DNA from: Parasitella parasitica NRRL 2501
Lineage: Eukaryota; Fungi; Mucoromycota
DNA: 64,000 bases
Reading direction: 5' to 3'
NCBI GenBank assembly: GCA_025201805.1
Contig: MU619247.1
Coordinates: 294,482 to 358,481 of the forward strand
Shown: one piece after another, positions 57,236-60,159 of the stretch
Layout of the letters: every line of letters starts with the position of its first letter
How positions within the stretch are numbered: the stretch's first letter is position 1
The notes under the pieces: model-generated
Seen by the model: the letters and a program-made list of their open reading frames with translations, nothing else
Told to the model about the DNA's origin: nothing
Databases searched by the model: none
Made by a program: the position numbers and the translations under genes

Positions 57236-59147
<1,912 letters not shown>

Positions 59148-59236
59148 ATAAAGTGATTTAGCACAAGTATAAACAGGCTCCTTCATATTTTTACATGATA
59201 GCATGTCAAAATGAAAGCGCCAGGTTTATCTTATAT

Positions 59237-59693
59237 TTATTGGGAGGTCAAGATATCAGAGTCACCGGCATCAGTGATGGAAAGAACACTGGTGCGGAAG
59301 AGCTTACCACAAGCAGTACCGAGATCGATGTTGTTACCATTGTAATGGTGAACACCAGTCTTGGACAACATGGCGTAGTACTCGATCTCAGACTTGCGGA
59401 GAGGAGGGCAGTTACCAGCAATGATGATCAACTTGGCTATTTGGGTGCAAAATGTTAGCAAAACGTCTCGGGGGAACAATCTCTGCCCAAGGGACAGAAG
59501 ACTACAATGGTTTTTGGGCTCCTGCCCCCCGAAAAGATGCAAAACTGTAGTCTGATAAACACTTACCCTTTCCTTGGCGGATGGTCTTCAAGGTAGTCTT
59601 GTAACCAAGAGTATACTTGCCAGACTTGGTAACGAGTTGGAGACGAGAGTTGATGGACTCGGCGTTCTTCTTGGACTTGACAGTAGGGGCCAT
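59237..59693 (-). CDS. RPL30: 60S ribosomal protein L30 (eL30); coding intron 59437-59566 and a 5'UTR intron ~59703-59752
   Basis: [42 protein letters not shown]|[63 protein letters not shown]. Confidence 0.98.
59468..59532 (-). promoter_or_regulatory. Intronic kink-turn hairpin, predicted eL30-binding RNA element in the RPL30 pre-mRNA
   Basis: RNA strands 5'-UCGGGGGGCAG-GA-GCCCAA and 5'-UUGGGC-AGA-GA-UUGUUCCCCCGA form a 6-bp C-stem, an AGA bulge, tandem G.A/A.G, then U.G opening an ~11-bp NC-stem with one bulged U. Confidence 0.85.
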
Positions 59694-60159
59694 TTTTATC
59701 TGCTATGGGTTAATTTTCAGTTTTGCCAGCGATTCGCCAAATGTACACTTACAGGTTGTAGACACGAAAGAGGAGGATCACAACAACACTCAAATTCAAT
59801 TTGACTTTTTCTGTTTGCCGAAGAAAAAAAATTTTACAGGCGACTACCATTTGGTGCCAATACACAAGCCACTAACTAATGCTCATGGTCTCCCTTTGAA
59901 TTGCCAGAGGGATCAGCGACGTGTTCTGCGTGGAAGCCCCTCGACAACCAATGTGCTTGTGTGTATGTGTGGGTGTGTGTGTGTGTGGGGTCACCAATTA
60001 TCACAGCGTATTATACATTTTAATCGTCAGTTTCGTAGATTAGACAATTTGATGGCTCTTTTTGGCTGTCCCTTGAATGCTCAATCATCTGTTTGATTTA
60101 GGAGCCCGCATAGCGAGATCGTAATGCGTAACTTGTCTTTCGCAAAAAAAAAAAAAAAA

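Follow-up and report, generated by a model that had tools for sequence, protein, structure and literature searches.

The gene for ribosomal protein eL30 (RPL30) in the mucoromycete fungus Parasitella parasitica NRRL 2501 carries, inside a coding intron and close to a branch-point-like motif, a hairpin with the sequence pattern of a kink-turn, and comparison with related fungi indicates that this hairpin is probably a functional eL30-responsive kink-turn that controls splicing, acting as a feedback sensor in the RPL30 pre-mRNA. The gene occupies 59237-59693 of the 64,000-nucleotide (nt) stretch that we analyzed (assembly GCA_025201805.1, contig MU619247.1, positions 294,482 to 358,481; hereafter the window), and it lies on the minus strand, as do all window features given below. 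Its two coding exons, exon 1 at 59567-59693 (42 codons plus 1 nt, with the ATG at 59693; MAPTVKSKK...RQGK) and exon 2 at 59237-59436 (including the stop codon TAA), flank a phase-1 intron of 130 nt at 59437-59566 (GUAAGU...GCUAAC...AAUAG). The kink-turn lies wholly within this intron, which interrupts codon 43; 35 nt separate it from the 5' splice site, and 9 nt from the branch-point-like motif.

Simple kink-turns have, once folded, a sharp kink in the axis (about 50 degrees). Their definition (PMC4316175) combines a canonical (C) helix with a bulge of three bases, followed by tandem G.A and A.G pairs and a non-canonical (NC) helix. The hairpin at 59469-59531 (intron positions 36-98), which is covered by both of our covariance models (R1, the full model, and R2, trained on other species only) and both of our alignments (A1 and A2), matches this pattern (Klein et al., 2001; Lilley nomenclature) at the level of sequence. 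From the loop outward it consists of a C stem formed by GCCCAA (59514-59519) and UUGGGC (59485-59490), which closes a variable terminal loop of 23 nt (59491-59513); the 3-nt bulge AGA on the 3' side (L1-L3, 59482-59484); tandem sheared pairs joining G1b and A2b (59480-59481) to A1n and G2n (59520-59521); a U.G wobble between 3b and G3n; and 9-10 further pairs that complete an NC stem of 10-11 base pairs (bp). In the NC stem, the 5' arm GGGGGGCAG (3n to 11n, 59522-59530) pairs with 59479-59471 of the 3' arm UUGUUCCCCCG (59469-59479). Pair counts support the 5' arm of the NC stem, and pair counts together with the alignment support the 3' arms of both stems. The sequence statements that a first-pass annotation of the window had made on this hairpin were verified; only its spacing of 8 nt between the hairpin and the branch-point-like GCUAAC (59454-59459) had to be corrected, to 9 nt counted from the G at 59469 that ends the last stem pair.

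The hairpin is conserved in the same intron of other species, whose genomic loci were obtained by way of eL30 proteins from a protein search. The module is found in the same phase-1 intron of Rhizopus microsporus, Cunninghamella blakesleeana, Phycomyces blakesleeanus, Syncephalastrum racemosum, and two further Mucorales assemblies; in a minimal version with a 5-nt loop in Umbelopsis; with a GCAA tetraloop capping the C stem in the Mortierellomycotina Gryganskiella and Linnemannia; and in a weaker version in Gigaspora. An alignment across Mucorales had been put forward as a test of the first-pass annotation, and in ours, Gigaspora aside, 11 other loci from Mucorales, Umbelopsidales, and Mortierellomycotina keep the GGAG / NGAGA core of the orthologous intron unchanged or almost so. 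Within alignments A1 and A2, positions G13 G14 A15 G16 C17 of the 5' strand and A-G-A of the 3' strand, which includes the invariant G1b and A2b, never vary, while the loop cannot be aligned and ranges from 4 to 93 nt. All four bases of the tandem sheared pairs (G1b, A1n, A2b, and G2n) are identical in 12/12 sequences, as is the protruding bulge base L3, always A; the bulge as a whole is AGA in seven sequences, UGA in four, and AAA in two. Outside the module, the intron sequences can no longer be aligned, and this is true even of the two copies in a single genome: the second eL30 gene of P. parasitica, on another contig and with an exon 2 that is 98% identical, has a 168-nt intron at the same codon that also carries the module and can be aligned to the window intron only at GGGGGACAGGAGCC ... 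GGCAGAGAUCGUCCCCC. Several public eL30 records of Mucoromycota (P0001-P0004 and P0052; loci L003, L004, and L102) are only 67-89 amino acids long, apparently through wrong annotation or omission of the kink-turn intron or of exon 1.

The stems vary in a manner that preserves pairing. Standard pairs occupy 84-87% of cells for the structure given above, compared with 36-59% when the pairing partners are slid by 1-3 columns, and four stem pairs show changes on both sides: for example, the C stem has U-A in place of C-G in Umbelopsis and one Mucorales assembly, and at the NC-stem base A-U takes the place of G-C in Umbelopsis and Gigaspora. Pairs 3 and 4 of the C stem are among those doubly changed in other genera (CG to UA or AU). 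The covariation score was reached by 0/500 shuffles, a count that overstates the significance somewhat because the compared sequences share ancestry.

Within the genome, the element is also specific to RPL30. Model R2 recovers the window site at 47.5 bits (E-value 3.4e-11) and the paralogue at 50.4 bits, with no further match in the 79 kb searched; R1 scores the window hairpin at 61.5 bits and, over the whole 32.8-Mb assembly, finds the two RPL30 introns only. Outside the species above, R1 has no match in 80 metagenomic eL30 loci, which are mostly not from Mucoromycota, and neither R1 nor R2 matches Syncephalis (where an intron occupies this site), Basidiobolus (with an intronless eL30 coding sequence), or the eL30 gene of Schizosaccharomyces cryophilus (which lacks a codon-43 intron). 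A scan of 58900-60100 against Rfam 15, at E-values up to 10, gave only chance matches to Atu_Ti3 and snR42. A generic kink-turn descriptor was discarded as too noisy (0.3 matches/kb in the window), and a strict L30-type descriptor matched five times among 77 metagenomic eL30 loci against 2.4 in shuffles, that is, without general enrichment. The sole strong match among those 77, with 6/6 NC pairs, is an eL30 gene on metagenome contig Ga0114919_10003724 (L063:488-650), where a kink-turn-like GUCUCU-GGA-GCUU / AGGC-UGA-GA-A-GGAGAC has its strands on either side of a 5' untranslated region (UTR) intron. There the 5' splice site comes directly after the 5' strand, the AG of the 3' splice site takes part in the C stem, and splicing would bring both strands side by side in the 5' UTR. 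Two other loci (L048 and L055, at about 600-790) have a weaker kink-turn-like GUUGCU-GGA-CUUG / CAGG-CAA-GA-U-GGUGCAG, with 4/6 pairs and no better than chance, in which the 3' strand includes a candidate AUG, reminiscent of the yeast layout.

Transcripts confirm that the intron is spliced and show that it is also found unspliced in an RNA-type run. Contigs of the public runs X1, X2, and X24 (the last a declared RNA-Seq library) all contain the exact exon joint 59436|59567, which bears out the 130-nt intron as first annotated. Run X1 also holds an unspliced contig (59440-59595) with the entire 130-nt intron and both exon borders. A second RPL30 intron, 53 nt long and without a kink-turn, lies in the 5' UTR at 59700-59752 (junction 59699|59753 in X1); among the run contigs none retains it (59721-59747), which argues against DNA carry-over as the source of the unspliced contig. 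A retained contig in X3, from a related organism, matches the window except in the loop and downstream of the hairpin. Reading through the intron of unspliced RPL30 RNA leads to an in-frame UAG at 59504-59502 after 63 codons (a 63-amino-acid open reading frame, 59502-59693), a stop that the first-pass annotation had placed correctly. The X1 contig in which the 5'-UTR intron is spliced out runs more than 230 nt past 59900, so some RPL30 transcripts begin well upstream of CCUCCUCUUUCG, a pyrimidine-rich sequence near 59775.

The position of the hairpin suggests how such a sensor could work. A CURAY-type branch-point motif follows the ...UCCC of the NC stem after 8-16 nt in 9/9 Mucoromycotina introns, and the hairpin lies 30-60 nt from the 3' splice site in these introns. 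Excess free eL30 would bind the kink-turn, sitting on the NC stem, the 3' strand of which stops 6-16 nt short of the branch point, and curb splicing; bound so close to the branch point, the protein may hinder branch-point recognition or engagement of the U2 small nuclear ribonucleoprotein (U2 snRNP). Translation of RNA that retains the intron would end at the UAG without making eL30, and the unspliced RPL30 RNA would undergo decay or stay in the nucleus. Yeast L30, when attached close to the 5' splice site, prevents U2 engagement (review PMC8047918). The conserved position next to the branch point could alternatively reflect a structural splicing element that acts without any protein, shortening the effective distance from 5' splice site to branch point or presenting the branch point, as zipper stems do in yeast, and involving no feedback. 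Structural splicing enhancers are known in yeast RPL7B (PMC12311795), and in some genera a helix links the 5' part of the intron to the hairpin loop, as described below. A plain helix, however, leaves unexplained why the unpaired GGA / NGAGA is the most conserved part while the letters of the stems vary, and why the element is restricted to the gene whose protein is alone in being known to bind exactly such a core; we consider this alternative unlikely.

The identity of the binding protein is suggested by the core itself, which the first-pass annotation equated with that of the RPL30 site of Saccharomyces cerevisiae. The 3' strand of the yeast site has CAGAGAU (...GCAGAGAUGG...). Its 5' strand, ACCGGAGUG (...ACCGGAGUGU...), is confirmed by a published RPL30 primer (PMC8970588). 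A single surface of eL30, with F85 of the yeast protein as the key aromatic contact, binds kink-turns both in its own pre-mRNA and in helix 58 of ribosomal RNA (rRNA) (PMC3706390). In the window, the two exons, searched separately, both match Pfam Ribosomal_L7Ae (PF01248) in profile searches, and exon 2 matches the eL30 chains of many solved ribosomes and of the yeast L30-mRNA complex (1T0K, chain 1T0K_B). Exon 2 encodes GKLFR and contains the aromatic RNA-contact residue equivalent to yeast F85, and the window protein, keeping GKLFR, probably binds the intronic kink-turn as an eL30-type site. The protruding base also bears on the choice of protein, since Snu13/15.5K and L7Ae strongly prefer a protruding U and yeast L30 prefers A or C, with G tolerated (PMC1874613). 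An A at L3 in every sequence compared is thus a base that L30 accepts, and the element lies in the pre-mRNA of the eL30 gene itself.

Tandem G.A kink-turns are recognized by all proteins of the L7Ae family, and the hairpin could in principle be a real kink-turn bound by another member (Snu13/15.5K, Nhp2, or eL8), making it a spliceosome-linked, small nucleolar ribonucleoprotein-like, or stable intron-derived kink-turn RNA like those reported from human introns; in mammals, intron-derived kink-turn and kink-loop RNAs reportedly regulate the splicing of their hosts (bioRxiv 10.64898/2026.08.03.742641). The invariant protruding A conflicts with the strong preference of Snu13 and L7Ae for U, and the window hairpin carries neither box C (RUGAUGA) nor box D (CUGA) at its termini and lacks a guide region. 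Confinement to two RPL30 genes in the 32.8-Mb genome, together with a core equal to the yeast L30 site as set out above, further points away from these proteins, and we regard their involvement in place of eL30 as very unlikely. Least plausible, and very improbable, is that the arms act at the level of DNA, for instance as a transcription-factor site or intronic enhancer serving a highly expressed gene, or were kept by shared ancestry without function: promoter-proximal intronic transcription elements are possible in ribosomal protein genes (review PMC8047918) and the compared sequences are related, but both arms are kept together across three subphyla, with four pairs doubly compensated around a spacer of 4-93 nt, while the remaining intron has diverged beyond alignment even between paralogues.

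Besides the shared ancestry of the sequences, several observations weigh against reading the hairpin as an eL30-responsive splicing sensor. Pair 4b.4n is mispaired in 8/11 sequences, the C stem of the paralogue is only 3 bp long, and Gigaspora and Syncephalastrum have a G.U pair closing the C stem along with the AAA bulge. The depths of the contigs are unable to quantify retention, and the unspliced RNA, which fits a splicing sensor as an indirect hint, counts as presence only. Folding energies beat shuffles by only about 1-1.7 standard deviations (z = -1.1 for the intron and -1.5 for the hairpin, with an overall range of -0.8 to -1.75), and for the window copy the nearest-neighbor minimum favors another local hairpin, 59504-59492 with 59488-59477, which competes with the C stem. 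Bifiguratus adelaidae has a same-site intron (240 nt) without the motif, matched by neither R1 nor R2. Finally, about 190-205 nt lie between hairpin and 3' splice site in Mortierellomycotina, so that occlusion of the branch point may fail there and the mechanism may be different.

Some of these observations can be placed more precisely. We take the folding result as neutral, because nearest-neighbor models give G.A pairs no score, and thermodynamic stability was set aside as evidence, the z-scores being too weak. The alternative 12-bp hairpin (UAGUCU.CUGUCC / GGGCAG.AGAUUG) would sequester the 3' strand of the kink-turn and overlaps the flank-to-loop helix described below; it is not reproduced in folds of R. 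microsporus, Umbelopsis, or Gryganskiella, and we do not claim a conserved switch on its account. In Mortierellomycotina the intron is about 550 nt long (L011:1337-1885; L102:1-465), with a conserved CUCAC 12-13 nt after the hairpin and about 190-205 nt before the 3' splice site, which could represent a remote branch point or hint at another mechanism. The Bifiguratus intron (L096:1327-1570) contains a long imperfect hairpin with GAUGA-like purine runs (CCACAGCAGGAUGAUGC...GAUGAA...GCUGUGG), lacks an L30-type core, and has a z-score that is not significant. On present sampling, the kink-turn is a trait of Mucoromycota that has been lost or has strongly diverged in Bifiguratus.

In some genera the kink-turn may be joined by an accessory helix. 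In the window, AGACUACAGU (59544-59553), in the flank of the hairpin, can pair with AUUGUAGUCU (59499-59508), in its loop, where it includes the in-frame UAG; the topology would be that of a pseudoknot. This pairing score was reached by 1/500 loop shuffles. The same GACUAC/GUAGUC pairing recurs in R. microsporus and Syncephalastrum (5/500 shuffles in Syncephalastrum); unrelated flank-to-loop helices reach marginal scores in one Mucorales assembly and Gigaspora, and the Phycomyces intron has none. A pseudoknot favored by a kink has a precedent in the SAM-I riboswitch (PMC4316175). We consider the evidence suggestive that a kink-favored accessory pseudoknot is a real feature of these introns, where it may hold the kinked form of the RNA or bring the 5' splice site close.

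The closest known system is the RPL30 site of S. cerevisiae (1T0K; Vilardell & Warner; Macias et al., 2008), with which the Mucoromycota element shares the gene, a simple kink-turn with the bulged strand on the 3' side, a basal NC stem and loop-ward C stem, GGAG on the 5' strand, U.G at 3b.3n, the protruding A, an NC-stem 3' strand that runs into a splicing signal, and the proposed outcome, a block of splicing before stable U2 engagement. It differs in location: the 5' UTR together with the AUG/5' splice-site region forms the yeast site, at another intron, one after codon 1, and the window site overlaps neither 5' UTR, start codon, nor 5' splice site. Because it lies inside the codon-43 intron near the branch point, the window site is a positional variant and not the yeast element itself. 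The yeast site, because of how it is built, stays in the mRNA and also represses translation (PMC3706390), whereas the Mucoromycota site is lost as a whole on splicing, which would put the mature mRNA beyond translational repression and leave only splicing to be controlled.

Other known elements are more distant. The rpl30 motif (Li & Breaker, 2017, BMC Genomics 18:785, PMC5640933) is likewise a candidate eL30-binding hairpin with a purine-rich internal loop in fungal RPL30 genes, but it is restricted to Pezizomycotina (36 species in the supplement, no Mucoromycota) and lies mostly in 5' UTRs, and its consensus GGCAC..AAUGAUC...UGAUGAUAAGGA..GUGCC has no sequence in common with the Mucoromycota core; consensus, location, and taxa together rule out the window hairpin as an instance of it. 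In Schizosaccharomyces pombe, Rpl30-1 is reported to lower the splicing of rpl30-2, with decay of the RNA left unspliced (Lemieux et al., 2011, cited in PMC4695336); unlike for the element described here, no kink-turn is named for rpl30-1 or rpl30-2 in the account given by the citing article. rRNA helix 58 provides an eL30-bound kink-turn, contacted through the same protein surface (PMC3706390), that is part of the ribosome and not a regulatory element, and which the intronic site presumably mimics. The P. parasitica assembly contains only 3' fragments of the large-subunit rRNA gene (G000:C61:68109-68718, L100; C243:13299-13611), and the rDNA array seems to be unassembled or collapsed. The suggestion that the element was undescribed in Mucoromycota agrees with our searches: a full-text literature search found no paper on L30 or kink-turns in Mucor or Rhizopus, Gao, Jones and Rivas (2021) do not mention L30, and Rfam 15 has no such family. 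What is new is the architecture, an RPL30 kink-turn within an intron and next to the branch point; the L30 recognition module was already known.

Splicing autoregulation of ribosomal proteins has been worked out well only in budding yeast. If the hairpin is an eL30-responsive sensor, Mucoromycota would provide a second natural architecture for this best-understood case, in which the same recognition module has its place beside the branch point, not at the 5' splice site, and is removed together with the intron. Two questions can then be posed: whether L30 blocks U2 sterically independent of position, and whether control of translation is dispensable. The element would also amount to a small splicing switch under protein control, measuring only 34 nt at its shortest (Umbelopsis and Mortierellomycotina), and could serve as an annotation marker for RPL30 introns. 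More speculatively, feedback on RPL30 in fungi could be ancient, with an RNA sensor that has been repeatedly rebuilt or moved: to the 5' splice site in budding yeasts, into the 5' UTR in Pezizomycotina, to both sides of a 5'-UTR intron in at least one uncultured fungus-like lineage (L063), and next to the branch point in Mucoromycota; in some Mucorales, moreover, the kink-turn could form a flank-to-loop pseudoknot that is possible only in the kinked state, as in the SAM-I riboswitch, so that binding of eL30 would refold the whole intron rather than mask a site. We regard this broader scenario as tentative and, taken as a whole, rather doubtful. For the fungi described here, the conservation of the kink-turn would mean that the RPL30 circuit predates, or arose apart from, Saccharomycotina, and that it has been held through the whole radiation of Mucoromycota, including in both copies left by a genome duplication.

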